Shown piece by piece: positions 11,162-64,000 of a stretch of 64,000 bases of DNA. Location: assembly GCA_036785375.1 (NCBI GenBank), contig JAWMAR010000070.1, positions 4,402,001-4,466,000 of the forward strand, written 5' to 3'. This DNA comes from Leucoraja ocellata (Eukaryota). Under the pieces are notes generated by a model that was not told the origin of the DNA, did not search any database, and saw only the letters and a list, made by a program, of their open reading frames with translations. The position numbers were made by a program, and so were the translations under genes. Numbering within the stretch: the stretch's first letter is position 1; every line of letters begins with the position of its first letter.

Positions 11162-11428
11162 CTAAGAAACGACAGAGGCATAGATTGACTCAGGGTTCTC
11201 TGGAGTCATAGTAGAGTGGGGTTTCCGAATGCCCTTTGGGCAGTTGCGGTGAAAATTGACATCTGCGTAGACGACAGCGTTTTCAGCCGCATGCTGCCTT
11301 GATCTCAACTTCCTTTGACAATTCACCACTGCATACGTGATTCCACCTTCATTGTTATCCGAATGGTCACCTGCCCTGTTGTTTTCCAGATTTGTATCAA
11401 CGTGGTTCCCTTCCAACACTGCCATTTC
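11162..11428 (-). CDS. Gene B last exon: cytoplasmic tail with ITIMs ITYAVV, VVYADV, SIYASV
   Basis: TTTCAG|GAA phase-0 acceptor; ORF 11162-11425; three matches to [SIVL]xYxx[IVL]; TAG stop. Confidence 0.9.
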   Translation of the reverse strand, partial: EMAVLEGNHVDTNLENNRAGDHSDNNEGGITYAVVNCQRKLRSRQHAAENAVVYADVNFHRNCPKGIRKPHSTMTPENPESIYASVVS

Positions 11429-11850
11429 CTGAAATATAACAAAATCCCATTTTACAACCTAATAGATTTGAAAGGTCCTCAACAGAGGTCTATTACAAAG
11501 TAGGTCTCAAACTGTTCAGTGTACAGAACAAGCCATGACTGCTGTTTACAACACAAAGATAGTGCAGCACGGTGGAGCAGCGGTAGAGTTGTTGCCTGAC
11601 AGCGCCTACAACAGGTTTGTATTTTAGGTCAATTGGTTTGGTTTAATTGCAAATTGCCCCTAGTGTGTGTAGGATAGTGTTCGTGTGCGGGGTCACCAGT
11701 TGGCGTGGGCTCGGTGGGCCAAAGGGCGTGTTTCTGCGCTGGATCTCTTAACTGGAGTGGACTGCTGTTGCTAAACGGTCGGTGTAAACACTGATAATTC
11801 AATATTATATATTCTTCATCACTCAGAAAATGTATATTTCACATTGTTAC

Positions 11851-11897
11851 CTGGGTTTCATCGTTGTCTTCACCGTGTGATGTATTGCACTTGGATT
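11851..11897 (-). CDS. Gene B cytoplasmic exon 1 (ESKCNTSHGEDNDETQ)
   Basis: TTTTCCAG acceptor, CAG|GTAACA donor; phase 1 to 0 bridges the TM and last exon. Confidence 0.8.
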
Positions 11898-12614
11898 CTG
11901 GAAAATATATTGTCGATAGAGCCATATCAGGAACAGGTTTAAACATCATTCATTCATATATTCCATTCATGTGTTCCATGTACCTTCTATATCTCTCGTT
12001 TCCCTTTCCCCTGACTCTCAATCTGAAGAAGGGTCGCGACTCGAAACGTCACCTGTTCCTTTTCAAGAGTCAAGGGAGTTTTATTGTCATATGTCCCAGA
12101 TAGAACAATGACAATCTTACTTGCTGCAGCACAATAGAATATGTAAACATAGTACATAACGGGAGAGAAAAAAAAGTTCAGTGTGTATATATACACATAC
12201 ACACATACTCAATCTGCTTATTTTATCCAGCTAAGCTGAGAACTACTATATTTGATGATTTTCTGTTGCGCTGCTGGCAAAATGTCGCTTCTGACCCGCT
12301 AATTGCTAGAGCATTTAATGTTCATCTTCAGTATTAACCACCATGTGCAGTTCCTTCCAACACACAAACATCTACATGTTTTGTGCAAGACGTTATATTT
12401 AGGAGAACCCCAAAAGTACTTCAGTATATTTGCACGTACGGAGTAAGTGTATGCCCTCTTGTTCTGGTTACTCTACGTAATGTTCAGAATGGATCATATT
12501 CCCTGTGCTCTACCCATTCCACCCTAAAGCTACCTAAACCTACCTGATCTCCCTGTTGCTCAAAATTTAAATCCACCTCCCATTCCCACACTAACTATTC
12601 TGTCCTGGGCCTCA

Positions 12615-13265
12615 TCCGGATGTTAGACTAACTGGTCTGTAATTCCCCGTTTTCTCTCTCGCTCTCTTTTTAAAAAGTGGAGTTACATTAGCTACCCTCC
12701 AATCCTCAGTAACTACTCCAGAATCTAAAGAGTTTTGAAAAATTATCACTAATGCATCCACAATTTCTAGGGCTACTTCCTTAAGTACTCTGGGATGCAG
12801 CCTCCTATCTTGCCCAGGGAATTTATCGGCCTTTAATCCATTCAATTGACCAAACACCACTTCCCGGCTAACCTGGATTTCACTCAGTTCCTCCATCTCA
12901 TTTGACCCCTGGTCTCCTGCTATTTCCGGCTGATTATTTATGTCTTCCTTACTGAAGACAGAACCAAAGTAGTTATTCAATTGGTCTGCCATGTCCTTGT
13001 TCCCCATGATCAATTCACCTGTTTCTGACTGCAAGGGACCTACATTTGTTTTAACTAATCTTTTTCTCTTCACATATCGATAAACACTTTTGCAGTCAGT
13101 TTTTATGTTCCCTGCCAGTTTTCTTTCATAATCTATTTTCCCTTTCCTAATTAAGCCCGTTGTCCTCCTCTGTGGACTCTGAATTTCCCCCTCTCCTCTT
13201 GTATGCTGCTTTTTTCTGGCTAATTTGTATGCTTATTCTTTTGTTTTGATACTATCCCTGATTTC
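12615..13265 (-). mobile_element. CR1 LINE internal fragment
   Basis: ORF 12612-13073: LHPRVLKEVA..DWRVANVTPLFKK..GNYRPVSLTS. Confidence 0.92.
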
Positions 13266-13570: not shown

Positions 13571-13659
13571 CATTGGTTTTACGCTTTCGGTACCAAAAGA
13601 AGGCAATGATGAGAATCAGGAGAAGCACAGTGACACCAGCCACAACTATGTAAATGATC
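13571..13659 (-). CDS. Gene B TM exon, uncharged (IIYIVVAGVTVLLLILIIAFFWY-RKRKTN)
   Basis: CCGACAG acceptor, G|GTGAGT donor, 89 nt phase 2 to 1; 23 hydrophobic residues then a basic stop-transfer. Confidence 0.92.
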
Positions 13660-16057: not shown

Positions 16058-16106
16058 CTTGATAAAGCATTGGATCCTTTCGAAGTTTCACAAGAATATT
16101 CATGTC
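16058..16106 (-). CDS. Gene B Cys mini-exon (GHEYSCETSKGSNALS)
   Basis: Polypyrimidine-AACAG acceptor, AG|GTAAAC donor, 49 nt phase 1 to 2; conserved in genes C and D. Confidence 0.85.
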
Positions 16107-17505: not shown

Positions 17506-17826
17506 CAGTGCCGTTGATTTTCACCAGGAAACTGCAGGGCACGTCACTGCTGGAGATGGACACGTTGACCATTTCACTGAATTTTGTTCCATTATTATTT
17601 GAGGTTGTGCAATAATATTGATGGTGCTGGTGTTTGAAGGATTGACAATGTAGATCCAGGGTATTGTTGTCTGAGATCTTTGAATCCCCAGATGGGGTCT
17701 TTTCATACCAGCTGTAGTTAATGGGAAGGGATCCCCGGACCGACTCACAGGACACTGTCACTGAGCCCCCGAGACAGGAGACATTGGCTGGTGACAGAAT
17801 CCCAAGCACAGGAACAGACACGGGTT
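17506..17826 (-). CDS. Gene B C2-like Ig exon (type b)
   Basis: CCCACAG|AA acceptor, G|GTAAGT donor, 321 nt; VTVSCESVRGSLPINYSW..YYC. Confidence 0.92.
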
Positions 17827-18819: not shown

Positions 18820-19140
18820 CGTCAGATACTTGGAGATGTACGTTAAATATTGGACGGTCGCCAGGTGTAGTAATTCCACAGCTGTACCATCCTGTATCTC
18901 CAGAGTGAAGATCCTCCACAGTCACAGCAAATATTCTTAGTGCCGGTATATCTGTGATTGACACTCTTCCACTCCGTCGGTTTTGCCCATTTGTTTCCAC
19001 TGAAACTCTACATGGGCGATTCCTCCCACGGCACCAGTATTTTGTGCGTGAGCGGTACTCTGCTGCATAGTGACAATCGATTGTGATCGCTCTTCCCACA
19101 ACTCCACTTACATCCCTCTCTGCCCACACTGCATCTGAAA
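18820..19140 (-). CDS. Gene B V3 exon
   Basis: ORF 18800-19129, canonical boundaries, 321 nt. Confidence 0.92.
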
Positions 19141-19289: not shown

Positions 19290-19700
19290 AATCCCACTTT
19301 TCAAGAAAGGAGCGAGAGAGAAAACGGGAAATTACAGAGCAGTTAGCCTGACTTCGGTGCGGGGAAGATGCCGGATTCAATTATTAAAGAGGTAATAATG
19401 GGGCATTTGGATAGCAGTAAAATAATTAGTCCAAGTCAGCATAGATTTATGAAAGGAAAATCATGCCTGACTAATCTTCTGGATTTTTTTGAGGATGTGG
19501 CAAGTAAAATGGACGAAGGTGAGCCAGTGAATGTAGGGTATCTAGACTTCAAGAAATCCTTTGTTAAGGTTCCGCACGGGAGACTGGTGACTAAATTGAG
19601 AGCGCATGGAAGGGTGTTGGCGTGGATAGGAAATTGGTTGGCAGACAGGAAGCAAAGGGTAGGAGTGAACGGGTCCTTTTCAGAATGGCGGGAAGTGGCG
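19290..19700 (+). mobile_element. CR1 RT fragment in the V2-V3 intron (also ~36065-36473, 53130-53540)
   Basis: GKSCLTNLLDFFE..YLDFKK..VPHGRL. Confidence 0.9.
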
Positions 19701-19739
19701 AGTCAGTGGAGACGACCAGTCAATCGCTGCGAAACGTAC

Positions 19740-20060
19740 CGTCAGATACATGGAGTTCTACGGTGAACATTGGGCGGCCGTTAGATGTTGCAATTCCACA
19801 TCTGTACCAGCCTGTATCGCCAGAGAGAAGATCCTCCACAGTCACAGTAAATATTCCTCGTGCCCGGTTATCTGTGATTGACACTCTTCCACTCCTTCCG
19901 CGTAGCCCATTCGTTTCCACCATATCTGTACATTGGCGACTCTGCACACGGCACCAGTATTTTGTGTGTGAGCGGTACTCTGCTGCATAGTGACAATCGA
20001 TTGTAAACGCACTTCCCACAACTGTTCTTACATACGTCTCTCCCCACACTGCAACTGAAA
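19740..20060 (-). CDS. Gene B V2 exon
   Basis: ORF 19720-20049, canonical boundaries. Confidence 0.92.
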
Positions 20061-20662: not shown

Positions 20663-20983
20663 CGTCGGATACTTCGAGATGAACGTTAAATATTGGATGG
20701 TCGGCAGATGTTGTAATTCCACATCTGTACCATCCTGTATCTCCATCCTGAAGATCGTCCACAGTCACAGTAAATATTCCTCGTGCCGGGTTATCTGTGA
20801 TTGACACTCTTCCACTCCGTCCGTGTTGCTCATTTGTTTCCACCAAAACTGTACATTGGAGACTCCTCCCACGGCACCAGTATTTTGTGTGTGAGTGGTA
20901 CTCTGCTGCATAGTAACAATCGATTGTGGTCGCTGTTCCCACAACTCCTCTTACATCCCACTTTGCCCACAGTGCACCTGAAA
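20663..20983 (-). CDS. Gene B V1 exon
   Basis: ORF 20643-20942 extended to the acceptor at 20983. Confidence 0.92.
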
Positions 20984-21053
20984 CTGAGGGGAGAAACTTT
21001 CAGATGGAGAGCAATGAACTGTTTAATGGAAATAGATACATTTTGAAGATTAC

Positions 21054-21754
21054 TTCTTCATATAAACGACTTCATCGCCTCCAATGCATTCAAAACTCTG
21101 CAGCCCGGATCATCACCCGCACCAGATCATCGGACCACATCACACCCATCCTCACTCAGCTCCACTGGCTCCCTGTGCACCACCGGATTAACTATAAGAA
21201 TTTACTGCTGACCTTCAAAGCCCTACACCACCTTGCTCCCCAATACCTCTCTGACCTGCTGCTACCATACACTCCTTCCCGGTCACTTCGTTCCTCCTCA
21301 GCTGCAATTTTAACTGTCCCCACATTTAGACTCGGCACAATGGTTGCCAGAGCCTTTGGCTGCTTTGCCCCACGTCTCTGGAACACTCTCCCACCTCCCT
21401 TCCGTCACCTGGACACTATCGATCAATTCAAATCACAACTCAAAACACACCTGTTTAGATTAGCATACCCGACATAACTTCCACCATGTTCACCCTGATT
21501 TTAATGACTTAAAATATTTTGTGTATTTTTTTGTTTTTTGTTTTTTGGCAACTTAATTTTAATATTGATAATTGTATTGTGATTTTATGTCCTGTAAGGT
21601 GTCCTTGGGTGTCCAGAGNNNNNNNNNNNNNNNNNNNNNNNNNNNNNNNNNNNNNNNNNNNNNNNNNNNNNNNNNNNNNNNNNNNNNNNNNNNNNNNNNN
21701 NNNNNNNNNNNNNNNNNNNNNNNNNNNNNNNNNNNNNNNNNNNNNNNNNNNNNN
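21054..21754 (+). mobile_element. L2 3' fragment (same insertion as 657-1329); tail falls in the N gap
   Basis: ORF 20926-21477. Confidence 0.88.
21619..21754. other. Assembly gap (136 N) at the expected (ATT)n microsatellite
   Basis: Flanks match the (ATT)n flanks in genes A and D. Confidence 0.95.
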
Positions 21755-23253: not shown

Positions 23254-23290
23254 CCGGCAGCGAGGAGATGAGAAGAATGGGAATCCACAT
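23254..23290 (-). CDS. Gene B leader exon
   Basis: MWIPILLISSLP, G|GTGAGT donor. Confidence 0.92.
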
Positions 23291-24304: not shown

Positions 24305-25903
24305 TAGTTGTATTATAATATGACAATATCTGCTGCGGGCTATCGTTCTGGGTGTGTTACTTTCAGGGGAACAGTGCAGTTTATTCGGGTTGTGTCCGTC
24401 ACTGGCATTGTTGTGTATCACGTGGTATGGGTGTAACACACTGATGTGTCCGCCACTGATGTTAGCTGCGCGCTGGCGACCCTCAGTAAATGATCTTTTG
24501 TTGGGAGCTATTTCCTGTTTACTTGCCCAACTAAAACACTGCAGAGAGGAACCGACGATGCAGCAAAACAATTTAATCCTGTCTTCATTCGCCATTGACC
24601 CATGACTTCTGCAAACACAGCTCAGCAAACAGTGTTACACCGAGCTGCTCGCAAGATGCGGTTCAGAGATACGAATCTACAGACTCTTGTTTCAGCAGCG
24701 CGAGAAAAGTGTCAGCACTGCAGAACAATTCAGTGTAAAGAGAGAAATGACTGTTTGATCATATTAGATTCAAGTACATTGCAAGTCAGCACCCACCGCT
24801 AAACACAACAGTGGCATCGACCCGAAATGTCACCCGTTCTTTCCCTCGAGTGATGCCGCCCTTCCCGCGGAATTGCTCCAGTATTTTGTGTATATCTGTG
24901 GCATCTCAGACCATTTATCTCTCATTATCCGAGAGGCACTTTGGGATGTCCTGCAGTGGGGAAATAATCCAACTCAAGATCATTCCGCCCATTAGACCAT
25001 AAACAAGCTCCATTTGAACGGGCCAGGCAGCATCAATGTGACCACAGAATCTGCAAGTATCTCTGGCTATTCAGCACCCCTCTGATATCCCTGACCTGGG
25101 GGTTTGTGAGTTCACAGCAGTCTCTGGTCTCATGTCCGCGTCTCCCTGCTTACTGTGTGGAGAATATTTATCTGTGTCAGTGGGACATTTTACCCAAAGC
25201 AATCCTTGAGTCTATCCGAACTTTATGGTGTTTACTCTGTTATTGCAGGTCACCATTTTGTATTCGCAAACAGCATCCTTCACAGTTCTTTCATGGGCGG
25301 GGTTACAGTCACACGTCAGACTAAGGAAAGCAACACAATGTATTTGCAGTTTCACACCCCGCGCTTTGCAAGCTGCAACTCCGCCATTTTGTTCTGCACA
25401 AGAATAGACTTTCCTCTAGTTTGGTTAAGTTTAGCTTAGTTACCTGGTATCTACTGATGCCGCCTGTCACGCTGAGTTACCCCAGCAATTTATGTGTATC
25501 TTCAGTTTAAACCAGCATCTGCAGTTCCTTCCTACCTAAAAATTAGTTGCAGATCGGAAATGAAATCTGCAGATGTTGGATGCGCCTCAGTCAGTGTTCG
25601 TGCAGAGAAAAATAAGGCTAATAGTCAGAACAATGCCGTTGCGTAATTTTGGTCTGATGGGATAGCATAGTCTGAAAGATTAATTGAATGTCTTCCCTAA
25701 TCGCCTTTAATGTTTGGCAACAAGAGGAATATCCAGCAGTCTAATCAAAACAAATTAGACAAACCGTTTATTAACAACAACCATTTATTAAGAAGCATTC
25801 TGTTGCATTATTATTCTTTAAGCTAGGAGTCTTCATTGTAATTCGTGGGTCGAGTGGCGAGGTTCTGTGTCGTCGCGTCTCTGCAAAAGACAATGTGAAG
25901 TCA

Positions 25904-26074
25904 TCAGACGGACTGACAGTGGGAACCACGCTTTATTTGTCCCGGCCACTCCCAACACATTGCTGTCTGCAAGATGCTAACCCACGAATTAGTTAATCCA
26001 ATGCCAACGAACCCACACCGGGCACAGAAATCCACCCTGCACGCGTACAACCTGACAGAACCTCGTGATATCAT
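25904..26074 (-). CDS. Candidate terminal exon of gene C (acceptor 26074 or 26051; no ITIM/ITAM in either reading)
   Basis: Unique sequence conserved downstream of the Arg-TM exon in C, D (partial) and E; minus AATAAA at 25932-25937 and 25784-25789; the true acceptor is uncertain. Confidence 0.35.
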   Translation of the reverse strand: MISRGSVRLYACRVDFCARCGFVGIGLTNSWVSILQTAMCWEWPGQIKRGSHCQSV

Positions 26075-26526
26075 CTACATAGAGATTTGGTTTAACTTCA
26101 GGATATGAAAACGTGCACGATTTTTGTTTCTATCGATGCACAGGATATATGAAAGCATTAATGGAAACCGTTTGGACACATTCGGCGAAGAGAAGGGATT
26201 GCTTTGGGCGAATCCCTTCTGGCGAATCTATGGATTTCATTGCCACAGGAGGCTGTGGAGGTCAATTTAATTCACACCGGAGATGCTGCCTGTCCCGCTG
26301 AGCTACTCCAGCATTTTTGTATCTGTCCAAATTAATTGATATTTTTAAGGCGGAGATTTTCATTTTCTTGATAAATAAGGATGTCAATGGTTACGGGGAG
26401 AAGGCAGGTGAATGGGATCGAGAGAGAAGGATAGATCAGACGTGATTGGGGGCCGATTAGATATGATGGGCTGAATGGCCTAATTCTGCTCCTATAATTT
26501 ATGAACATGATGACAATAAAACCTAC

Positions 26527-26617
26527 CTTAGAGCCTCTTGTGAACACCGCGGTTGAGATACTCCAGATCACAAGCAGGAGAAAAAACATCCAGCGCCCCA
26601 CTTCCCATGAGATGTAA
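26527..26617 (-). CDS. Gene C TM exon with membrane Arg (SYISWEVGRWMFFLLLVIWSISTAVFTRGSK)
   Basis: TTTGCCCAG|T acceptor (phase 2), AAG|GTAGGT donor; conserved in three copies. Confidence 0.85.
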
Positions 26618-26685
26618 CTGGGCAAAGGGCAAGAGATACGGAGTCAATGGGAGGAAACGAGACGGGTAATCTTTGAAGCATTTAC

Positions 26686-26751
26686 CTGTTATTTGCTTCA
26701 TAATCTTGGTGAAGTGGAGCGCGGCGAAGCGGCAGCGTCAGTGGAGACCAT
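26686..26751 (-). CDS. Gene C candidate stalk exon (RWSPLTLPLRRAPLHQDYEANN)
   Basis: TTCTTTTACAAAG acceptor, AG|GTAAAT donor, 66 nt phase 2/2; only the phase-2 frame is open; 68-nt intron to the TM exon. Confidence 0.6.
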
Positions 26752-26787
26752 CTTTGTAAAAGAACGGGTGTTGGACTGGGTGGAGGT

Positions 26788-26818
<31 letters not shown>

Positions 26819-28254
26819 AACATATGATCACCAATTGTTGACGTCATTGCTGGGGCATGGCTACAAGACTGGGAATGAGAGACTACGCGGTTAAATGGAT
26901 TCAGAGAAGATAGATAAATAAGTCATGAGTTGGGGCAGTGAATACAAAACAGGTGGACACAAAATGTTGGAGAAACACAGCGGGAGAGGCAGCATCTCTC
27001 TGGAGAGAAGGAATGCGTGAAGTTCCGGGTCGAGACCCTTCTTCAGACCAAGAGTCACGGGAGAGGGAACTGTGGATGTGGAAGGATACAAAGAACAGTG
27101 TGATACCCTGGAAGAAAGAAAATGCAGCTGCAAGAAGATTATAATAAAATCCATTTGGATAGACAGGAATAATAAAAACGGATCAATTCCAATAATGGAA
27201 GGGAGATGGGCAATAAAAATGGAAACAGATGAGGCCAATTAATAAAATTAATTAAAAAATGATTATACTTAATCTCACACCCTGGATACTTCGTGGATCA
27301 ACGCGGTAGGTGTGTGGATGGAGGAATTGTGCTCGAAAAATCGGTTTAAGGTTCGCTCATAACGGCGTGGCTTTCATGAACATTTGCTAACGCAAGTATA
27401 ACACAAGAGTGTGATAGAAAGTCAGATCTATTTCAATTGTGATAAGATAAACAACAAAATGTTCCCACTTTCATGACTATATTATGATTGAATATTTAAT
27501 TCAAGTTTCAAGTATCAACGAGTAAGAGAGAGTCAGATAACTCATTTTGCTGTATTCGGATGAGGTGAGTGATGGAGCAGTCATGTTGAATACTACAGGG
27601 AGCGCTCTCTGAAAAGCATCAAATGGAGGAACTTGTTCTTATCATCCAAGCATGTACACAACACAATGAGATGTAAACCAGTGCGATTCCCCCTCTGATG
27701 AGTTAACTAATAACTGGTTTGTAAGGTATATTTATTGTATTAAATAATATTTAATAGATACGTTTATATTTGGTGTCAGGCTTGAAACTTGTACAACAAT
27801 TGGTTATGCTTCATGACATTTAGGTTCATTGGATCAAAGACCCATAGAGAAACACAGTATAGAAACAGGCCGTTTCCGTCAACTGCATTCACATGATTTC
27901 TGTGTCAATCCTATTTTTATTTCCCCCACTTGCTCATCAGCTATCACCCCCACCCCCACCCCACCCATTCTTCACAGATTCAGCCACTCTCCTGTACACA
28001 TGGGGCAATTTACAACTGGCTCATCTTTGGGAGCTGGGAGGAAACTGGAGCACTTGAATGAAACCAACACAATTAAAGGCAAAACATGCAGACCACGTAC
28101 AGACAGCTCATAATGAACCAATGGCGTGGCGTTGTGAGACTGTGGCTCAACACTCTCACGCATTTAATGCCAGTTTCTCCCAATTAAAGCATTCCCCAAT
28201 CAAAACACCAGCAATTAGTACATTGTAACTTTCATTGGAAACAGAGCATTTTAC

Positions 28255-28303
28255 CTTGCAGAGTAATTGGATGGTATCGAATTTTCACAATAACATTCAA
28301 GAC
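28255..28303 (-). CDS. Gene C Cys mini-exon (GLECYCENSIPSNYSA)
   Basis: Paralog of 16058-16106 with canonical sites. Confidence 0.85.
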
Positions 28304-29596
28304 CTGTTGGAACAAGGAAATAAAAGTCAGTTTCACTGCTTTTCACTTGCAGTTTAACAAGTAGCTATGATTTTCCGATGCAAGGAGTTGATAGGCTTAG
28401 CAGACGGGGCAATGCTTCTTCTGTGTGATTTGCAGCAAATGGGAGATGTTATCATGACAAGCAGGAGTGCTGGTAACAACTCTGGCTCCAGGTGTAGATG
28501 GCACGATGGCGCAGCGGTAGCGTTGCTGCCTTACAGCCAGAGGCACGGGTTCGATCCTGACCACGGATGCTGTCTGCACGGAATTTGTAACTCCTCCCTG
28601 TGACCGCGTGGGGTTTCTACAAGTGCTCCAGTTTCCCCACAGTCTGAACTCTTGCAAGTGTGTTGGTTAATTGGCTTCTGTAAATTGTCCCCATGGAACT
28701 AGTATACTGGTGATTACTGGACGTTGTGTACTCAGTGGGACGAAGAACCTGCTTCCACGATGTATCCACAAATTAATCAAAAGGGTCCAATTTCATTTGA
28801 GAGGAGTATTGCTTGGGATGAAACATTACAGTGATGGGGAGGGGTTGGATAGGGGTTTTATAAAATTCCATTCAGAACAGGTGAGGAAGGAGGGACCTAT
28901 TACAGGTGTACAAAACTATGAGCAGCATAGACAGGGTAATTTTGGAACATTTTACATGACAGATATGTGTAAAAGTGGAGAACATATGGGTAAGTTAAGG
29001 AGCAGGATGTTTGAAGGGTATAAATAAATATTTTTAAACCGAGAAGATAGAGGTACCTGAATTGCCTCAATGGACGAGGTGCTGGTAAGTGGGATGAGTA
29101 TTGATTGTACTGAATGGACAACATTAACACAGTGACCCAAATGCGATACCGTCGTCTAGTAGTTAACTGTGGCCACATTTACTGATAATTTCTGATCCCT
29201 TCACATATTTGAGTGTCGGTCATGTGCAGATGATGAAAAGTGAAAATGCTTGGACTGATGTCACTACAAACCTAGTTTAAAGCTGTGTAAACATAAGAGG
29301 CAATTCTAGCCGGGAAGCTGGTCTACACCAGCACTGGGAAATCTATTTATGGAGCCCAGCAACCAAGTATTGACAAATGGGCCATAATGCCATCATTTTA
29401 ATCTTGATAACGTAATTAAATAATGTGCATGGATTTCAGGGTGTCGGGGGTTTGGGGAGAAGGCAGGAGAATGGGGTGAAGAGGGGAAGATACATCAGCA
29501 TTGATTGAATGGTCTATTTCTGCTTCTATCACATGTGATTTTATGAACCACCCCACCCCCACTTCCCCTTCTTCTCCTCATTTCTCCACTACTTAC

Positions 29597-29917
29597 CAGT
29601 GCCGTTGATTTGCACCAGGAAACTACAGGGCACGTCACTGCTGGAGATGGACACGTTGACCATTTCACTGGATTTTGATCCATGTTGATTTGAGGCTGTG
29701 CAGAAATATTGATGGTGTTGGTGTTTGAAGGATTGACAATGTAGATCCAGGGCATTGTTGTCTGAGATCTTTGAATCCCCAGATGGGGTCTTTTCATACC
29801 AGCTGTAGTTAATGGGAAGGGATCCCCCGACCGACTCACAGGACACTGTCACTGAGCCCCCGAGACAAGAGACATTGGCTGGTGACAGACACCCAAGCAC
29901 AGGAACAGACACGGGTT
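29597..29917 (-). CDS. Gene C C2b exon
   Basis: ORF 29589-29972, canonical boundaries. Confidence 0.92.
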
Positions 29918-30811
29918 CTGTGGGAAAGGAGCAAACAGTCAGACACTGAGTGAACATCATAAAATCAAACACTCGCCAATATCCACCATCTCTGTGTCTT
30001 CACTAGAGCCGCCAGGTTGGAATCTGACCCATCCATCTACATAGAGTCATAGAGGCATATAGTGTAGAAGCAGGCCAACATGCCCATCCACACTAGTTCC
30101 ACCTGCCCTTGCTTAGCCCATAAGCTTCCAAACGGAAGAGACCGTGCATTTACTCGATCTATTCGTCGCGTGATTTTGTAGCTGCCATAAGATCATCCCT
30201 CATCCTCCTGCTCTCCCAGAAATAAAGTCCTAGTCTGCTCAATCCCTCCCTGGAGTTCAGGCACTCAAGTCATGGCAGCATCCTTGTAAATCTTCTCTGC
30301 ACCCAATCTTACTTGATAGCATCTTTCCTATAACATGGTGATGAATACTGACCACAGAGCAGACATATCATCAGACAATCTTCGATTCTCTTATATATTT
30401 CAGGAATTGCCAGCAGGAAAAAGGGAGCATTGTTTATATACCTGTCGGACCCATCCCATCTGCATAGATTCGTAGTCATACAGTAGAAACTTCGGCCTAA
30501 CTTGCCCGCGCTGACCAACACGCCCAATCTACACTAGTTCCACCTGTCCTTTCTTGGCCCTTAACCCTCTAAACATATCCTATTCATGTAACTGTCCAAT
30601 ATTTTCTGAAATGTTACGTTAGTATCTGCCATAACTACTTCCGTCGGCATTTCGTTTCATGGACCTACCAACCTTTGTGTAAACACGTTACTCGCCAGCT
30701 TCCTGTTAAATCATCCCCCCCTGATATGAAAACTATGTCCTCTGGTTCCCTATTCCCCTACTCTGGGCAAAAGACTGTGTATTTACTCGATCTATTCCTC
30801 GCGTGATTTTT

Positions 30812-31514
30812 GTGATTTTTAAAAAAAATTAATAAATATTTTTATTTGAATCAATGTACAGTAGTATAAACCGTGTTTTACATATTACATTTAGTGTAAA
30901 ACTTCTTGTTTTTAATTTATTAATAGAAAAGTAACAGAAGCAAAAATGAGAAGGAGAGAGAAAGTTAAGTAGTGATATTGATAGTTCGTGAAAGAATAGA
31001 TAGAAAGAACCCGTAAAGATATAAAGTCGTAAAAAATCCGTGACCCCCCCTCCCCCCGAAAATTAAATACATTAATTAGTAAATAGAAATAAAAAATAGA
31101 AAATAAAATAAAATAATAAGAAAACAAAACAGAAAAAGAATAAAAGGGAGAAGGGATATACCTGCTTCATGTCTTTCCACACCCCTCGCCTAGTTCTGAA
31201 ACAGTTAATTTCCAGGGTTATGTTGCACCATGTACTTGGAATAAGTCGATAAAAGGAGACCAAATCTTTAGGAATTGGTCTGCTTTACATGCTAGGACGA
31301 ATCTTATATCTTCGAGGTGTAACATTTCAGACATGCTTGAAATCCACATTTTACGCGTGGGGGTGGGTTCGTTGTTCAAGAATTTGAGTATACGTTTTTT
31401 TGCTGTTATCAAGCCGTGGTTAAGGAGAGAATTTTGGAACGAAATCAGCTTAGAGCCGGCTTCCATTGTTCCAAAAATAATCAATTCAGTGTTGGGGTCC
31501 AATTTTATTTTAAA
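30812..31514 (-). mobile_element. 5'-truncated L1-clade LINE with 14-bp TSD
   Basis: ctcgcgtgattttt at 30798-30811 and 31515-31528; ORF 31218-31547 ends KRIL..W..FLKIWSPFI; empty site in gene D ~48203. Confidence 0.8.
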
Positions 31515-46147: not shown

Positions 46148-46196
46148 CTTGCAGAGTAATTGGATGTTATCGAATTTTCACAAGAATATTCATGAC
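46148..46196 (-). CDS. Gene D Cys mini-exon (GHEYSCENSITSNYSA)
   Basis: Paralogy and canonical sites. Confidence 0.85.
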
Positions 46197-47420: not shown

Positions 47421-47741
47421 CAGTGCCGTTGATTTTCACCAGGAAACTGCAGGGCACGTCACTGCTGGAGATGGACACGTTGACCATTTCACTGGATTTT
47501 GATCCATTATTATTTGAGGCTGTGCAATAATATTGATGGTGCTGGTGTTTGAAGGATTGACAATGTAGATCCAGGGCTCTGTTGTCTGAGATCTTTGAAT
47601 CCCCAGATGGGGTCTGTTCATACCAGGTGTAGCTAATGGGAAGGGATCCCCGGACCGACTCACAGGACACTGACACTGAGCCGCCGAGACAGGGTTCATT
47701 GGCTGGTGACAGGAATCCAAGCACAGGAACAGACATGGGTT
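47421..47741 (-). CDS. Gene D C2b exon
   Basis: ORF 47413-47805. Confidence 0.92.
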
Positions 47742-48923: not shown

Positions 48924-49241
48924 CTTCAGATACTTGGAGATATACTTTAAATGTTGGTTCGCCAGGTGTAGTAATTCCACATCTGTACCATCCTCTATCT
49001 CCAGAGTGAAGATCCTCCACAGTCACAGTAAATATTCCTCGTGCCGGGTTAACTGTGATTGACACTCTTCCGCTCTGTCCATGTTTCCCATTTGTTTCCA
49101 CTACATGTGGACACTGGCGACTTGTCTCACGACACCAGTATTTTGTGTGTGAGCGGTACACTGCTGCATAGTGACAATCGATTGAGATCGTTCTTCCCAC
49201 AACCCCTCGCACTTCGCTCTCAGCCCACAGTGCGCCTGAAA
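48924..49241 (-). CDS. Gene D V4 exon
   Basis: ORF 48904-49254. Confidence 0.92.
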
Positions 49242-50447: not shown

Positions 50448-50768
50448 CTGCATTGTTGATTTCTGTCACATAACTGCACGTTCCTGCTCCTTTGAAGACT
50501 TTCACGTTGAGTATTTCACTGGATTTTGTCCCACGATTATTTGAGGCTGTGCAGTAATATTGACGATGTTGACCTTCGAGGATTTCACAACTCAGATCCA
50601 GTTGATTGCCAGACACGGTAGTTGAAACCCAATGCTCGTTCTTCTCAAACCATGTGTAATGGATGGGAAGGGATCCACGGACAGACTCACACGACACTGA
50701 CACTGAGCCTCCGAGATGTGAGGCATTTGCTGGTGACAGATATCTGAGCACAGGAGCAGACATGGGTT
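50448..50768 (-). CDS. Gene D C2a exon
   Basis: ORF 50299-50763. Confidence 0.92.
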
Positions 50769-52263: not shown

Positions 52264-52584
52264 CGTCAGATACTTGGAGATGTACGATAAATATTGGACG
52301 GTCGGCAGGTGTAGTAATTCCACAGCTGTACCATCCTGTATCTCCAGGGTGAAGATCCTCCACAGTCACAGCAAATATTCTTAGTGCCGGTATATCTGTG
52401 ATTGACACTCTTCCACTCCGTCCGCGTTGCCCATTTGTTCCCACTAAAACTGTACACGAGCGATTCTTCCCACGGCACCAGTATTTTGTTTGTGAGCGGT
52501 ACTCTGCTGCATAGTGACAATCGATTGTGATCGCTCTTCCCACAACTCCTCTTACAACCGTCTCTGCCCACACTGCATCTGAAA
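52264..52584 (-). CDS. Gene D V3 exon
   Basis: ORF 52244-52573. Confidence 0.92.
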
Positions 52585-53538
52585 CTGAGGGGAGAAACTT
52601 TCAGATGGACCAGTTGACCAGGGAGTTACGGAGCGAACGGTGTCTTCGGAAAGCGGTGGAGATGGAAAGGTGTGGCTAGTTATCTGGTTATGGGATCCCG
52701 TTGGAGGTGGCGAAAATGTTGGAGGAGTATATGTTGCGTGCGACGGCTGATGGGGGTGAAAGATGAGTTTATTTTGCTTACCACCGGGGAAATGTCCGGG
52801 TGTACAGTGGCTGTTGGGGGTGGGGGCCCATTGATGGGGCAGAGGGGGAGAGAGAGAGAGAGCGCGGGATGGGGAGGGAATGACTGATCGTTGAGGTGAG
52901 AGCGGGAAGCGGTATGAACTGCACCGGGAGGACTGATGAGCTCTGGGGACTGATATTTTTTTTAACTCTCCGGGTATTCAGACCGCGAGCAACACTTGTT
53001 CTTCACTGTGGGATTATAAGTTTGAGTCTGAATGCAAACTTCTGACGGGTGACATTTCATACAGTTCAGAGGAAGGGAAATGCGCTGAGTATTCCACTTG
53101 AAGTGAAAAGTGAAGTGAAAGTGAAGTTAAATCCCACTTTTCAAGAAAGGAGCAAGAGAGAAAACGGGAAATTACGGACCAGTTAGCCTGACTTCGGTGC
53201 GGGAAAGATGCCGGAGTCAATTATTAAAGAGGTAATAATGGGGCATTTGGATAGCAGTAAAATAATTAGTCCAAGTCAGCATGGATTTATGAAAGGAAAA
53301 TCATGCCTGACTAATCTTCTGGAATTTTTTGAGGATGTGGCAAGTAAAATGGACGAAGGTGAGCCAGTGAATGTAGTGTATCTAGACTTCAAGAAATCCT
53401 TTGTTAAGGTTCCGCACGGCAGACTGGTGACTAAAATGAGAGCGCATGGAAGGGTGTTGACGTGGATAGGAAATTGGTTGGCAGACAGGAAGCAAAGAGT
53501 AGGAGTGAACGGGTCCTTTTCAGAATGGCGGGAAGTGG

Positions 53539-53650
53539 CGGCACCAGTATTTTGTGTGTGAGTGATACTCTGCTGCATAGTGACAATCGATTGTAAACAC
53601 ACTTCCTACAACTGCTCTTACATACGTCTCTCCCCACACTGCACCTGAAA
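53539..53650 (-). pseudogene. Gene D truncated V2 exon
   Basis: Reads to KYWCR, then joins the CR1 fragment (HFPPF*); 250-bp deletion relative to gene C 36474-36723. Confidence 0.9.
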
Positions 53651-54253: not shown

Positions 54254-54574
54254 CGTCAGATACTTGGAGATAAACGATAAATATTGGATGGTCGGCAGAT
54301 GTCTTAATTCCACATCTGTACCATCCTGTATCTCCATCCTGAAGATCGTCAACAGTCACAGTAAATATCCCTCGTGCCGGGTTATCTGTGATTGACACTC
54401 TTCCACTCCGTCCGTGTAGGCCATTTGTTTCCACCAAAACTGTACATTGGGGTCTCCTCCCACGGCACCAGTATTTTGTGTGTGAGCGGTACTCTGCTGC
54501 ATAGTAACAATCGATTGTGGTCGCTGTTCCCACAACTCCTCTTACATACCACTTTGCCCACAGTGCACCTGAAA
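54254..54574 (-). CDS. Gene D V1 exon
   Basis: ORF 54234-54533 extended to the acceptor. Confidence 0.92.
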
Positions 54575-54645
54575 CTGAGGCGAGAAACTTTCAGCTGGAG
54601 AGAAAATGAACTGTTTAATGGAAATAGATACATTTTGAAGATTAC

Positions 54646-55230
54646 TTCTTCATATAAACTTCTACATCGCCTCCAATGCATTCAGAACTCTGCAGCCCGG
54701 ATCATCACCCGCACCAGATCATCGGACCACATCACACCCATCCTCACTCAGCTCCACTGGCTCCCTGTGCACCACCGGATTAACTGCAAGATTTTACTGC
54801 TGACCTTCAAAGCCCTACCGCACCTTGCTCCCCAATACCTCTCTGACCTGCTGCTACCATACACTCCTTCCCGGTCAATTCGTTCCTCCTCAGCTGCAAT
54901 TTTAACTGTCCCCACATTTAGACTCAGCACAATGGTTGCCAGAGCCTTTGGCTGCTCTGCCCCACGTCTCTGGAACACTCTCCCACCTCCCTTCCGTCAC
55001 CTGGACACTATCGATCAATTCAAATCACAACTCAAAACACACCTGTTTAGATTAGCATACCCGACAAAACTTCCACCATGTTCACCCTGATTTGAATGAC
55101 TTAAAATATTTTGTGTGTTTTTTTGTTTTTTGTTTTTTGGCAACTTAATTTTAATATTGATTATTGTATTGTGATTTTATGTCCTGTAATGTGTCCTTGG
55201 GTGTCCAGAGAGGCGCCAGCAAATAAAATG

Positions 55231-56824: not shown

Positions 56825-56861
56825 CCGGCAGCGAGGAGATGAGAAGAATGGGAATCCACAT
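56825..56861 (-). CDS. Gene D leader exon
   Basis: MWIPILLISSLP, G|GTGAGT donor. Confidence 0.92.
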
Positions 56862-60040: not shown

Positions 60041-61310
60041 CCGAGAAGCGAGAACAATCGCAGGCTCAGCAATCGTTTCGCTGAACACCGCCCCCCAGTC
60101 TGCCTACCCCTACCTGATCTATCTACTGATGCCGCCTGTCACGCTGAGTTACCCCAGCAATTTATGTCTATCTTCAGTTTAAACCAGCATCTGCAGTCCC
60201 TTCCTACCTAAAAATTAGTTGCATATCGGCAATGAAATCTGTACATGTTGGATGTGCTTAGCGCGTCAGTCAGCGTCTGTGCAGAGAAAAATAAGGCTAA
60301 TAGTCAGAACAATGCCGTTGCATAATTTTGGTCTGATGGGATAGCACAATCTGAAAGATTAATTGAATGTCTTCCCTAATCGCCTTTAATGTTTGGCAAC
60401 AAGAGGAATATCCAGCAGTCTAATCAAAACAAATTAGACAAACCGTTTATTGACAACAACCATTTATTAAGAAGCATTCTGTTGCATTATTATTCATTAA
60501 TCTGTGGAAAAAAAATCCAGGAAATTGTATGCATATAATATAGTTTAACATAGGATAAAACTCTGAAGCAGCATAAACCACGCAAAGGTTAAAACAATAG
60601 TTCGAAGCTGACGACAGAAACCTTGGAAGAGGTGGCAAAAATTAAGATGGTGCAAGCTAGGAGTCTTCATTGTAATTCGTGGGTCGAGTGGCGAGGTTCT
60701 GTGTCATCGCGTCTCTGCAAAAGACAATGTGAAGTCATCAGACATACTGACAGTGGGAACCACGCTTTATTTGTCCCGGCCACTCCCAACACATTGCTGT
60801 CTGCAAGATGCTAATCCTCGAATTAGTTAATCCAATACCAACGAACCCACACCGGGCACAGAAATCCACCCTGCACGCGTACAACCTGACAGAACCTCGT
60901 GATATCATCTACACAGAGATTTGGTTTAACTTCAGGATATGAAAACGTGCACGATTTTTGTTTCTATCGATGGACAGGATATATGAAAGCATTAATGGAA
61001 ACCGTTTGGAAACACTCGGCGAAGAGAAGGGATTGCTTTGGGCGAATCCCTTCTGGTAAATCTATGTATTTCATTGCCACAGGAGGCTGTGGAGGCCAAG
61101 TTAATTCACACCGGAGATGCTGCCTGTCCCGCTGAGCTACTCCAGCATTTTTGTATCTGTCCAAATCAATTGATATTTTTATGGCGGATATTTTCATTTT
61201 CTTGATAAATAAGGATGTCAATGGTTACGGGGAGAAGGCAGGTGAATAGGATCGAGAGAGAAGGATAGATCAGCCGTGATTGGGGGCCGATTAGATATGA
61301 TGAGCTGAAC

Positions 61311-63770
61311 GGAGGAAGAGGATTTCTTGGAATGTATGCGGGATAGTTTTCTAAACCAACATGTAGAGGAACCAACGGGAGAGCAGGCTATTCTAGACTG
61401 GGTATTGAGTAATGAGGAAGGGTTAGTTAGAAGTCTTGTTGTGCGTGGCTCCTTGGGCAAGAGTGATCATAATATGGTTGAGTTCTTCATTAGCATGGAA
61501 AGTGACATTGTTAATTCAGAAAAAAGGCTCCTGAACTTAAAGAAAGGTAACTGTGAGAGTATGAGACGTGAATTGGCGAAGATAGACTGGCAATTGATTC
61601 TAAATGGGTTGACGGTGGATATGCAATGGAAGGCATTTAAAGACTGCATGGATGAACTACAACAATTGTTCATCCCAGTTTGGCAAAAAAAATAAATCAG
61701 GGAAGGTAGTGCATCCGTGGATAACCAGGGAAATCAGGGATAGTATCAAAACAAGAGATGAAGCGTACAAATTAGCCAGAAAAAGCAGCCTACCAGAGGA
61801 CTGGGAGAAATTCAGAGACCAGCAGAGGAGGACAAAGGGCTTAATTAGGAAAGGGAAAATAGATTATGAAAGAAAACTGGCAGAGAACATAAAAACTGAC
61901 TGCAAAAGCTTTTATAGATATGTGAAGAGACAAAAGGTTAGTTAAAACGAATGTAGGTCCCTTACAGTCAGAAACAGGTGAATTGATCATTGGGAACAAG
62001 GACATGGCAGACCAATTGAATAACTACTTTGGTTCTGTCTTCTCTAAGGAAGACATAAATAATCTGCCGGAAATCGCAGGGGATCAGGGGTCAAATGAGT
62101 TGGAGGAACTGAGTGAAATCCAGGTTAGCCGGAACGTGGAGTTAGGTAAATTGAATGGATTAAAGGCCGATAAATCCCCAGGGCCAGATAGGCTGCATCC
62201 CAGAGTACTTAAGGAAGTAGCCCCAGAAATAGTGGATGCATTAGTGATAATTTTTCAAAACTCTTTAGATTCTGGTAGTTCTTGAGGATTGGAGGGTAGC
62301 TAATGTAACCCCAATTTTTAAAAAGGGAGGGAGAGATAAAACGGGGAATTACAAACCAGTTAGTCTAACGTCGGTAGTGGGGAAACTGCTAGAATCAGTT
62401 ATTAAAGATGGGATAGCAGCGCATTTGGAAAGTGGTGAAATCATTGGACAAAGTCAGCATGGTTTTACGAAAAGAAAATCATGTCTGACGAATCTTATAG
62501 AATTTTTCGAGGATGTAATTAGTAGAGTGGATAAGGGAGAACCAGTGGATGTGTTATATCTGGACTTTCAGAAGGTTTTCGAAAAGGTCCCACATAAGAG
62601 ATTAGTATACAAACTTAAAGCACACGGTTTGGGGGTTCAGTATTGATGTGGATAGAGAACTGGCAGACAAGAAGCAAAGAGTAGTAGTAAACGGGTCCTT
62701 TTCACAATGGCAGGCAGTGACTAGTGGGGTACCGCAAGGCTCAGTTCTGGGACCCCAGCTATTTACGATATATATTAATGATTTGGAGGAGGGAATTGAA
62801 TGCAACATCTCCAAGTTTGCGGATGACACGAAGCTTGGGGGGCGGGGGGGGGGGGGGGGGGGGGGCAGTGTTATATGTGAGGAGGATGCTAGGAGGCTGC
62901 AAGGTGACTTGGATAGGCTGGGTGAGTGGGCAAATGCATGGCAGATGCAATTTAATGTGGATAAATGTGAAGTTATCCACTTTGATGGCAAAACAGGAAA
63001 GTAGACTTATAATCTGAATGGTGGCCGATTAGGAAAGGGGGAGATGCAACGAGACCTGGGTGTCATGGTACTCCAGTCATTAAACGTAGACATGCAGGTG
63101 CAGCAGGCAGTGAAGAAGGCGAATGGTATGTTAGCATTCATAGCAAAAGGATTTAAGTATAAGAGCAGGAAGGTTCAACTGCAGTTGTACAGGGTCTTGG
63201 TGAGACCACGCCTGGAGTATTGCGTACAGTTTTGGTCTCCTAATCTGAGGAAATATATTCTTGCCATAGAGGGAGCACAGAGAAGGTTCACCAGACTGAT
63301 TCCTGGGATGTCAGGACTTTCATATGAAGAAACACTGGATAGACTCGGTTTGTACTCGCTAGAATTTAGAAGATTGAGGGGGGATCTTATAGAAACTTAC
63401 AACATTCTTAAGGGGTTGGACAGGCTAGATGCAGGAATATTGTTCCCGATGTTCGGGAAGTCCAGAACAAGGGGTCACAGTTTAAGCATAAGGGGGAAAT
63501 ATTTTAGGACTGAGATGAGGAAATCATTTTTCACATAGAGAGTGGTGAATCTCTGGAATTCTCTGCCGCAGAAGGTATTCGAGGCCAGTTCATTGGCTAT
63601 ATTTAAGAGGGAGTTAGATGTGGCCCTTGTGGCTAAAGGGATCAGGGGGTATGGAGAGAAGGCAGGTACAGGATACTGAGTTGGATGATCAGCCATGATC
63701 ATATTGAATGGCGATGCAGGCTCTAAGGGCCGAATGGCCTAGTCCTGCACCTATTTTCTATGTTTCTATG
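61311..63770 (+). mobile_element. 5'-truncated CR1 LINE (~2.46 kb; endonuclease C-terminus, RT, 3' end), frameshifted
   Basis: ORFs 61327-63538 (LGKSDHN, PGPDRLHPRVLKE, FADDTKL); inserted at gctgaa^tggcctaatt, empty in gene C (~26475). Confidence 0.95.
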
Positions 63771-63819
63771 GCCTAATTCTGCTCCTATAATTCATGAACA
63801 TGATGACAGTAAAACCTAC

Positions 63820-63910
63820 CTTAGAGTCTCTTGTGAACACCGCGGTTGAGATACTCCAGATCACAAGCAGGAGAAAGAACATCCAGCGCCCCACTTCCCA
63901 TGAGATGTAA
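63820..63910 (-). CDS. Gene E TM exon with membrane Arg
   Basis: YISWEVGRWMFFLLLVIWSISTAVFTRDSK, canonical sites. Confidence 0.83.
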
Positions 63911-64000
63911 CTGGGCAAAGGTCAAGAAATACAGAGTCAATGGGAGGAAACGAGACGGTTAATCTTTGAAGCATTTACCTGTTATTTGCTTCATAATCTT

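Follow-up and report, generated by a model that had tools for sequence, protein, structure and literature searches.

A probable tandem cluster of MDIR genes with two alternative tail modules in the skate Leucoraja ocellata

The stretch of Leucoraja ocellata DNA analysed here (hereafter the window; 64,000 nt) carries head-to-tail gene units of about 17 kb on its minus strand that are 93-96% alike. Each gene would encode a type I membrane protein with a short leader, interchangeable phase-1 Ig exons and one of two alternative 3' modules, and the Ig chain is predicted to combine V domains of the pIgR/CD300 type with C2 domains of the FCRL type. Positions given below count from the first letter of the window, and all exons lie on the minus strand. 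The features reported by a first-pass annotation were all recovered in the DNA at or near their assigned places and on this strand, and its suggestion of a probable cartilaginous fish agrees with the closest proteins, all of which come from skates: Leucoraja erinacea (up to 96% in one exon), Amblyraja radiata, Rhinoraja longicauda and Raja/Rostroraja eglanteria. As it had pointed out, the small exons are absent from the list of open reading frames (at least 80 aa), the exceptions being the ITIM exon and the Arg-bearing transmembrane (TM) exon of gene C. The introns contain TE insertions.

Gene A, which runs past the window start, is represented by a leader exon (2849-2885) and a V1 exon (266-586). 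A relic of a V4 exon, comprising the first two thirds of the exon (5091-5300), abuts the upstream block of this gene. Gene B (23290-11162) encodes, in this order, V-V-V-C2b, a stalk, a TM without charged residues and a two-exon cytoplasmic part that contains three ITIMs. Its leader exon (23254-23290) starts with the ATG, encodes MWIPILLISSLP plus one further nucleotide, ends at a GTGAGT donor and matches MDIR3 residues 5-16. The same leader and donor occur at four sites (2885, 23290, 39350 and 56861), with the gene C copy differing at two residues; the leader is 12 codons long in each gene. The Ig exons of gene B are V1 (20663-20983; phase 1-1, taken from the upstream of two acceptors 6 nt apart), V2 (19740-20060), V3 (18820-19140) and C2b (17506-17826). 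They are followed by a 49-nt stalk exon (16058-16106; HEYSCETSKGSNALS, phase 1 to 2), a TM exon (13571-13659; phase 2 to 1) encoding 23 uncharged residues, IIYIVVAGVTVLLLILIIAFFWY, and then RKRK, a first cytoplasmic exon (11851-11897; ESKCNTSHGEDNDETQ, phase 1 to 0) and a last coding exon (11162-11428) with the ITIMs ITYAVV, VVYADV and SIYASV before the stop. All three motifs fit (I/V/L/S)xYxx(I/V/L), and their tyrosines are 22 and 29 residues apart. Once phosphorylated, this tail should recruit SH2 phosphatases and so dampen cell activation. The exons add up to 1770 nt, which gives the 590 codons predicted earlier, and no stop occurs before the last codon.

Intron 1 of gene B holds a non-coding assembly gap (N, 21619-21754) that lies 636 nt from the nearest exon, V1, which starts at 20983. 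On either side of the gap the sequence lines up with units A and D in unchanged order and orientation, and the unaligned spacing is 121 and 115 nt in these units versus 136 N here. The collinear flanks and the intronic site make continuity plausible and leave the reading frame unaffected.

Genes C and D share the order V-V-V-C2a-V-C2b, stalk, Arg-bearing TM exon and a last exon of 15 codons. In gene C the leader exon (39314-39350; MWIPILIIASLP) precedes V1 (37438-37758; V-set E 1.3e-13), V2 (36513-36833; V-set E 1.4e-11), V3 (35569-35889), C2a (33751-34071), V4 (32216-32533), which belongs to the membrane-proximal V subfamily, and C2b (29597-29917). All four V exons match the Pfam V-set (E 1.1e-13 to 1.9e-11), and the two C2 exons match Pfam Ig_2, Ig_3 and Ig_C17orf99. 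The stalk exon (28255-28303; 49 nt, LECYCENSIPSNYSA, phase 1 to 2), the Arg-TM exon (26527-26617; YISWEVGRWMFFLLLVIWSISTAVFTRGSK, phase 2 to 0) and the last coding exon (25833-25880; RRDDTEPRHSTHELQ and stop) complete the gene. Its exons total 2145 nt (715 codons), again with a stop only at the end; this total and that of gene B are arithmetic on exon lengths, no joined sequence having been assembled. Gene D consists of a leader exon (56825-56861), V1 (54254-54574), a V2 remnant of which only the first 110 nt or so persist and whose donor is deleted (53541-53650), V3 (52264-52584), C2a (50448-50768), V4 (48924-49241), C2b (47421-47741), a stalk exon (46148-46196; HEYSCENSITSNYSA), an Arg-TM exon (44037-44127) and a last coding exon (42068-42115; RRDDTEPRHSTHELQ and stop). 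Since the broken V2 is a phase-1 exon, it can be skipped with the frame kept, which would leave gene D with five Ig domains. Only the tail of gene E lies inside the window (Arg-TM exon, 63820-63910; last coding exon, 60667-60714, RRDDTEPRHSTHELQ and stop); its Ig exons fall past the window end. The Arg in the TM and the tail devoid of signalling motifs that had been ascribed to C, D and E are thus present in all three. The TM exon of this module has a conserved W-x-V-G-R-W start and leads into a 20-residue tail without motifs, and its Arg is found at the outer margin of a hydrophobic run of 18 residues, which a further Arg closes.

Canonical AG/GT splice sites and compatible phases were found at every join of the modelled genes. 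A pattern script fully delimited 14 of the 18 Ig exons, all of them 315 or 321 nt long, phase 1-1 and free of stops; with the upstream acceptor the cassettes are 318 or 321 nt, phase 1-1. For two V4 exons the script gave the donor end only, and their starts were read by eye and then passed frame and stop checks. Gene D V2 showed no donor, and the V4 relic near 5300 showed neither boundary. Splicing was modelled from splice sites, phases and the public MDIR proteins of another skate, not from RNA of L. ocellata. Every V exon begins with a signal-peptide end and all Ig exons are phase-1 cassettes, so a single gene could yield several ectodomain lengths.

The family is not new: by sequence likeness, the genes in the window are MDIRs (modular domain immune-type receptors), a family reportedly described by Cannon et al. 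in 2006 (Immunogenetics 58:362). The earlier mention of MDIRs as mere relatives understated this. When MDIR3 (ABC86797.1) and MDIR5 (ABC86800.1) from the clearnose skate, Raja (Rostroraja) eglanteria, were compared with the window by local tblastn, their matches followed the exon order from leader to stop, with identities of 64-90%. Identity to these two proteins is 80-84% for C2a, 79-86% for V4, 83-86% for C2b, 78% for the ITIM tail and 87-90% for the Arg-TM exon (90% to MDIR5 in gene C), with the leader and V exons also collinear. Gene B shares with MDIR3 the leader, the Ig subfamilies and their order, the stalk type, the uncharged TM followed by RKRK and the three ITIMs (tail 78% and C2b 86% identical), whereas MDIR3 is V-V-C2a-V-C2b and gene B, from another species, is V-V-V-C2b. 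Genes C, D and E share with MDIR5 the stalk CEN.I.S.YSA, the Arg-TM exon and the short tail ending in HELQ, but MDIR5 is V-C2a-V-C2b, whereas C and D have three distal V exons. Numbers of distal V, C2a, proximal V and C2b exons vary as in the family at large, with four Ig exons in gene B, six in gene C, five in MDIR3 and four in MDIR5. The order V-V-V-C2-V-C2 had been thought possibly undescribed; a crude motif count shows this exact order to be absent from 265 fetched relatives, but in a family whose hallmark is variability of this kind it amounts to a minor variant. ITIM forms and short-tail forms occur side by side, gene B having the MDIR3 tail and C, D and E the MDIR5 tail, so both tail modules were already in public records. 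Taken as a whole, the best explanation is probably that the window is part of a tandem skate MDIR gene cluster whose units arose by recent duplication.

The similarity between units is unevenly distributed. Genes B and C are 94.6% identical through C2b, the last stretch that is about 95% alike, and then 77.9% identical over 1.4 kb that includes the stalk exon; past this region only short TE-like pieces align. The claim of near-identical ectodomains on two unrelated 3' modules needs qualifying: paralogous Ig exons are 92.5-98.4% identical in DNA but only 86-95% in protein, and the modules are not entirely unrelated, as their stalk exons and flanking intron are 78% alike. Likewise, a shared V/C2 ectodomain is seen in B, C and D, with the qualification that gene B is without C2a-V4, gene D has a truncated V2 and the Ig exons of gene E lie beyond the window. 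The C2a-V4 cassette is absent just downstream of gene B V3, at a junction near 18674/18677 that corresponds to 4,663 nt of gene C, and this alignment indicates that gene B lost the cassette by a 4,663-nt deletion relative to gene C. The C2b of gene B is 90.6% identical in amino acids to that of gene C but only 84-86% to those of MDIR3 and MDIR5, and the stalk tracks tail type across species, B resembling MDIR3 and C and D resembling MDIR5. These features are consistent with recombination that would keep or make the ectodomain-coding parts of both gene kinds alike, with a breakpoint in the intron after C2b. If ectodomains are kept alike in this way, inhibitory and putative activating receptors would see similar ligands.

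The paired-receptor layout proposed in the first-pass annotation is present: one gene combines its ectodomain with an ITIM module, the neighbouring genes combine similar ectodomains with the Arg-TM module and its short tail, and all of them point the same way. The C/D/E module would most likely signal by pairing of its Arg with an acidic TM residue of an ITAM adaptor, and it is roughly an even question whether C, D and E are activating partners of gene B. Among 265 fetched elasmobranch relatives the Arg-TM motif was found in 43 (rays, skates and sharks, from carpet sharks to skates) and the strict ITIM-tail pattern in 14, and none of the 265 combined the two. In the copies listed a short tail comes after the motif, except where the gene model continues into an adjacent gene or intron. 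A broader proposal is that MDIR5-type receptors are true activating partners of MDIR3-type receptors by way of an ancient elasmobranch TM module (W-x-V-G/I-R-W) docking an ITAM adaptor (perhaps not FcR gamma), that ongoing recombination just after C2b keeps the ectodomains matched and that leader-to-any-V splicing could vary ectodomain length. We offer this proposal tentatively, the chances being somewhat against all of its parts holding together.

Several observations count against an activating role and for the view that C, D and E encode non-signalling receptors, which might be membrane-anchored decoys, adhesion-type molecules or, if the 49-nt stalk exon is skipped, secreted proteins, with the conserved Arg merely interfacial. 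The tail is free of motifs, and the marginal position of the Arg in the hydrophobic run means that it may be interfacial rather than buried. The 2006 abstract is said to have listed MDIR5 as without activating or inhibitory motifs and not to have classed it as activating. Three NCBI models from other skates (P0004, P0005 and P0207) leave out the stalk exon and terminate ahead of the TM, in a shifted reading frame that skipping of the stalk would also produce here; the deposited MDIR5, however, retains the stalk exon in frame. In addition, Akula et al. (2014; PMC4016189) report having found no FcR gamma chain in cartilaginous fish. On the other side, the conservation of the TM start and juxtamembrane motif in the 43 relatives goes far beyond the needs of simple anchoring, the TMs of ITIM forms vary more between species (judged by eye on the sequences listed) and the Arg-TM module never accompanies the strict ITIM-tail pattern in the relatives fetched. 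On balance, the non-signalling view is unlikely.

Somewhat less probable still is that the duplicated units, or some of them, are not working genes but copies that are young, not expressed or in decay. Exon identity between units equals intron identity, and the pooled pN/pS between paralogous Ig exons is 1.04, a value that would also fit relaxed constraint and counts against the reading preferred here, although values near 1 are common in fast-evolving immune receptors. The putative activating counterparts described earlier as expanding are recent tandem duplicates, which fits that description, but with a pooled pN/pS of about 1 and a broken V2 in one copy. The truncated V2 of gene D, the partial V4 relic at 5300-5091 and the intronic TE insertions also suggest decay, whereas all other exons of B, C and D are open, their splice sites are intact, the frames add up and the broken phase-1 exon is skippable. 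There is almost no RNA depth on exons (at most 1.8 on the C2b exon and 0 on the stalk exon), and none of the 15 joints listed for four RNA runs is a splice joint (180 further joints being unlisted), but the reads used cover only 5-25% of each run, of unstated tissue. In these runs 95-99.7% of the reads lie only partly on the window and are heaped on a few short repeat-like stretches. It is highly improbable that the ectodomain exons of C and D serve as alternative 5' portions of a single long transcript that ends in the TM and ITIM exons of gene B, as nothing positive speaks for this beyond the single strand, each unit has an ATG-bearing leader and a stop-bearing terminal exon of its own, the deposited MDIR5 ends in the Arg-TM module and splices of 15-30 kb over complete genes would be required.

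The window provides a base-level gene map of an MDIR cluster that locates the switch from the shared ectodomain part to the tail-specific part within the intron that follows C2b. As the MDIR family, its two types of tail and its modular build were already known, the map adds detail rather than a new kind of receptor. With an Arg-TM module conserved across sharks and rays, the map makes testable whether paired inhibitory and activating signalling and ectodomain homogenisation were already in place in cartilaginous fish, and via which adaptor.

NCBI models named 'polymeric immunoglobulin receptor-like' or 'Fc receptor-like protein 5' in L. erinacea, A. radiata, R. longicauda, stingrays and sharks belong to the same family and have the same two tail modules; the best match is the 96% in one exon of L. 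erinacea, and none is identical to the window. Such automatically assigned names conceal that these are MDIRs. In related skates, automatic annotation gives the family a wrong label, pIgR-like or FCRL5-like, and frequently merges adjacent genes, as in the run-on or fused models P0153, P0001 and P0010 and in P0040, which is fused to a TRIM gene.

The V exons of the window match pIgR chains (E 2.7e-55, several domains summed) and CD300A (2q87, E 2.4e-20), and the C2b exon matches FCRL5 (9loc, E 2.7e-36 over three stretches). However, pIgR and CD300 have V-type domains only and FCRL C2-type domains only, whereas MDIRs interleave both, and the tails differ too. Membership in CD300/CMRF35 was rejected since there are four to six Ig exons including C2 types in place of a single V-type Ig, although the V domain itself is similar. 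The V similarity to pIgR is real, but the interleaved C2 exons and tails that bear ITIMs or are 20 residues long, as against a long sorting-signal tail, exclude that family; FCRL was rejected as only the C2 exons resemble FCRL5 and most domains are V-set. The layout is that of PIR-A/PIR-B, LILR, KIR, CD300 and Siglec-5/14, in which adjacent genes combine ectodomains that resemble each other with either an ITIM tail or a basic TM residue and a short tail; a published description of PIR-A and PIR-B uses the same terms (PMC2213385). The two tails in the window are unrelated exon sets and not mutated forms of a single tail, and the comparison is one of layout and not of orthology.

The tandem genes in the window form a cluster of modular domain immune-type receptors, or MDIRs. 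PMC3031540 is a paper on the same subject and contains the phrase 'modular domain immune'. The V3 exon of gene C was compared with 1.84 billion representative proteins and gave 2,216 matches at E <=0.001, 99 of them at E <=1e-30; the nearest were NCBI models of skates, rays and sharks. A search with a Rhinoraja protein model, P0003 (87 proteins), returned MDIR3 (ABC86797.1) and MDIR5 (ABC86800.1) of Rostroraja (Raja) eglanteria, and a search with MDIR5 (124 proteins) added MDIR2 (ABC86796.1). MDIR3 and MDIR5 are collinear with the exon map, and their alignments break at the splice sites read from the DNA. Identity to the window is 80-84% in the first C2 exon (C2a), 79-86% in the membrane-proximal V exon (V4), 83-86% in the second C2 exon (C2b), 78% in the ITIM exon and 87-90% in the transmembrane exon that bears an arginine (Arg-TM exon). 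These collinear matches identify the cluster as MDIR and place both tail modules in public records. The first-pass annotation had cited MDIRs as related to the cluster; the kinship stands, but the novelty is lost since the genes are themselves MDIRs. Among the proteins searched, none matches the window exactly; a Leucoraja erinacea model comes nearest, with 96.4% identity in one exon.

The window has a vertebrate-like composition (G+C 40-50%), and self-comparison shows that most of it is made up of tandem copies of a unit of about 17 kb with 93-96% DNA identity. All the MDIR-type genes discussed lie on the minus strand. Gene A (leader at 2885, V1 at 586-266) continues past the window start, genes B, C and D occupy 23290-11162, 39350-25833 and 56861-42068, respectively, and gene E has only its last two coding exons (63910-63820 and 60714-60667) in the window. 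Intron 1 of gene B contains an N gap at 21619-21754, separated from V1 by 636 nt. The flanks of the gap match units A and D in order and orientation, with a spacing there of 121 and 115 nt versus 136 N, and no coding sequence depends on the gap. It begins about 140 nt past the end of a plus-strand ORF (183-232 aa) of a repeat found in intron 1 of genes B (20926-21477), A (529-1080) and D (54392-55090). This repeat is absent from gene C, and the alignment of B with C ends at 21053/37829. In genes D and E, the intron that follows the Arg-TM exon and precedes the last one holds plus-strand LINE reverse-transcriptase ORFs (42215-43905 and 61327-63538), whereas the self-comparison found no LINE reverse-transcriptase remnant in the matching intron of gene C. 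D and E therefore split after the insertion. Genes B, C and D also carry reverse-transcriptase fragments in the intron between V2 and V3 (19368-19766, 36141-36539 and 53208-53561, plus strand), and gene B has a further one on the minus strand, between its TM and cytoplasmic exons (12612-13073).

The long minus-strand ORFs represent Ig exons plus read-through across their splice sites. A pattern script set both ends of 14 of the 18 Ig exons. Two V4 exons received only a donor end from the script; their starts were read by eye and passed frame and stop checks. The donor of gene D V2 is absent, and a V4 relic near 5300 has neither boundary. The delimited exons are 315 or 321 nt long, with two codon-completing bases after AG and one base before GT, and are thus phase 1-1. 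The V exons have paired acceptors 6 nt apart (..cag/TTTCAG/G.., for example 37758/37752), either of which keeps the frame. The deposited MDIR3 and MDIR5 use the upstream acceptor, which makes the exons 321 nt long (V4, 318 nt) and gives them a V-S-G-A start, so every V exon opens with this signal-peptide end. About 110 nt of gene D V2 are left; being a phase-1 cassette, it can be skipped with the frame intact. The V4 relic (5091-5300, minus strand) retains the first two thirds of the exon joined to gene A's upstream block, a remnant left by an old deletion or by unequal crossover.

All four V exons of gene C belong to the Pfam V-set family (E 1.1e-13 to 1.9e-11); for C2a and C2b the Pfam matches are Ig_2, Ig_3 and Ig_C17orf99. 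Among solved structures, V1 comes closest to pIgR and CD300 chains, with NKp44 and TREM2 next, and C2b to FCRL5. Between paralogous Ig exons, identity is 92.5-98.4% at the DNA level and 86-95% at the protein level, and their pooled pN/pS of 1.04 is compatible with relaxed constraint as well as with rapid receptor evolution.

Leaders were sought as hydrophobic peptides that run from an ATG to a phase-1 donor. One candidate is common to four units: MWIPILLISSLP and one further base ahead of GTGAGT, with two residues that differ in gene C. The first 16 residues of MDIR3 match only these four sites in the window, so no second leader precedes V4. A hydrophobic stretch at 1789, 22201, 38267 and 55772 was dropped as a leader because it has no in-frame ATG.

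The small tail exons were located by local tblastn of the C-terminal parts of relatives on the window, and their splice sites were then read directly. Gene B continues from C2b into a stalk exon of 49 nt (16106-16058, phase 1 to 2), a TM exon (13659-13571, phase 2 to 1) that encodes the uncharged segment IIYIVVAGVTVLLLILIIAFFWY followed by RKRK, a cytoplasmic exon of 47 nt (11897-11851, phase 1 to 0) and a last exon (11428-11162) with ITYAVV, VVYADV, SIYASV and a stop. Gene B TM joined directly to the ITIM exon is out of frame, and the 47-nt exon restores the frame. Stalk exons are also present in genes C (28303-28255) and D (46196-46148). In genes C, D and E, the Arg-TM exon encodes YISWEVGRWMFFLLLVIWSISTAVFTRGSK (phase 2 to 0) and the last exon encodes RRDDTEPRHSTHELQ before a stop. 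A direct joint of C2b to the Arg-TM exon sets phase 1 against phase 2 and reaches a stop out of frame after 16 codons; the 49-nt stalk exon therefore restores the frame. The out-of-frame joints that skip the stalk exon are 29597-26617 in gene C and 47421-44127 in gene D (16 codons), and three NCBI models of other skates (P0004, P0207 and P0005) end in exactly this reading, which is possibly a soluble isoform or a recurrent model error. A hydrophobic read-through after C2a (33744-33688) was rejected as an alternative TM since it falls within an intron according to the MDIR records. Genes C, D and E share a consensus donor, CAG/GTAAAT, some 70 nt upstream of the acceptor of the Arg-TM exon (26686/26685, 44196/44195 and 63979/63978, minus strand). 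It is degenerate at the matching gene B site (about 13740) and unused in MDIR5, and may mark a vestigial or optional stalk exon.

Thirteen pieces from 10 public relatives were placed by local tblastn; among the matches listed, those to the Arg-TM exon fall at 26.6, 44.1 and 63.9 kb alone, and those to the ITIM exon solely at 11.4 kb. MDIR3 and MDIR5 place both exons at the same sites. Coding lengths were obtained by arithmetic on exon lengths, the searches having used single exons or public proteins only. Gene C adds up to 2145 nt (715 codons) and gene D, minus its broken V2, to 1824 nt (608 codons). Gene B adds up to 1770 nt (590 codons), which equals the figure of 590 in the first-pass annotation.

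The proposal that near-identical ectodomains are attached to two 3' modules is borne out by genes B and C, which are 94.6% identical from upstream of C2b to its donor. Past C2b, identity falls to 77.9% over 1.4 kb including the stalk exon, and beyond this stretch the genes cannot be aligned apart from short repeat pieces. The modules are thus unrelated beyond the stalk but not within it. Gene B also skips from position 30763 to 35426 of gene C, a loss of 4,663 nt that removes C2a and V4. Stalk type tracks tail type across species but C2b does not: the C2b of gene B is 90.6% identical to that of gene C versus 84-86% to either clearnose-skate C2b. The boundary between the shared ectodomain and the tail-specific part thus falls in the intron after C2b, as would be expected if the two receptor kinds had undergone recombination or conversion.

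Among 265 elasmobranch relatives, 43 contain the motif W-x-[VI]-[GIAS]-R-W-x-x-F of the Arg-TM exon, and in the copies listed a short tail follows unless the model runs into a neighbouring gene or intron. A strict ITIM-tail pattern was found in 14 of the 265, a certain undercount, and none of the 265 combines this pattern with the Arg-TM motif in one protein. The Arg-TM motif spans carpet sharks to skates, and its retention argues for a putative partner-binding role. Within the 18-residue hydrophobic run, the Arg sits at the outer edge and a second Arg closes the run. Receptors coupled to FcR gamma have an Arg near the outer TM end, and the Arg-TM exon resembles them. The Arg could equally be an interfacial residue. 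Akula et al. 2014 (PMC4016189) report that cartilaginous fish yielded no FcR gamma chain, PIGR or FcRL, which leaves an adaptor for the Arg-TM receptors putative. The chances that the Arg-TM genes are activating receptors appear about even.

A search for sequencing runs listed 24, of which three entries of kind '?' contained 0.42-0.47 of the words of the stretch; no RNA run among the 24 contained it. Reads of four raw-read RNA runs (X6, X10, X13 and X8; tissues unrecorded) were placed on 25001-30400 only, with 5-25% of each run read. Between 95 and 99.7% of the placed reads were partial on the stretch and piled on a few short stretches that resemble dispersed repeats. The deepest pile-ups (up to hundreds) are at 25361-25540, 26261-26500 and 26981-27160, and their reads match over 20-40 nt before continuing into unrelated sequence. 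They represent short pieces of dispersed repeats with expression elsewhere in the genome. At this sampling, depth over the C2b exon was <=1.8 in the four runs, with first mates mapping to the plus strand, as would be expected of minus-strand RNA in a usual stranded library, and the stalk-exon bin had a depth of 0. Besides 180 further joints, 15 were listed, and each of these 15 was a strand change or a backward jump.

MDIRs reportedly contain one to six Ig domains from four Ig subfamilies. MDIR1 is said to have a charged TM residue and MDIR2 and MDIR3 to have ITIMs, while MDIR4 and MDIR5 reportedly have no characteristic motif. Domain orders in the 265 relatives were obtained by a crude motif count, in which 24 gave no marker. 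The order V-V-V-C-V-C was found in none of the 265, V-V-C-V-C in four (MDIR3 among them), V-C-V-C-V-C in 13 and V-C-V-C in 25. The six-domain order, which the first-pass annotation suggested might be undescribed, may indeed be unrecorded so far, but it amounts to one extra distal V, and variation of this sort is what defines the family. The map of the genes is nevertheless of use. MDIR3 consists of a leader, V, V, C2a, V, C2b, a stalk and an uncharged TM, and its three tail ITIMs are identical to those of gene B. MDIR5 consists of a leader, V, C2a, V, C2b and a stalk of the type found in genes C and D, followed by SYISWKVGRWLLFLLLVIWSISTAVFTRGSK and KRDESEPRHSAHELQ. The family, its tail modules and the modular principle are already known.
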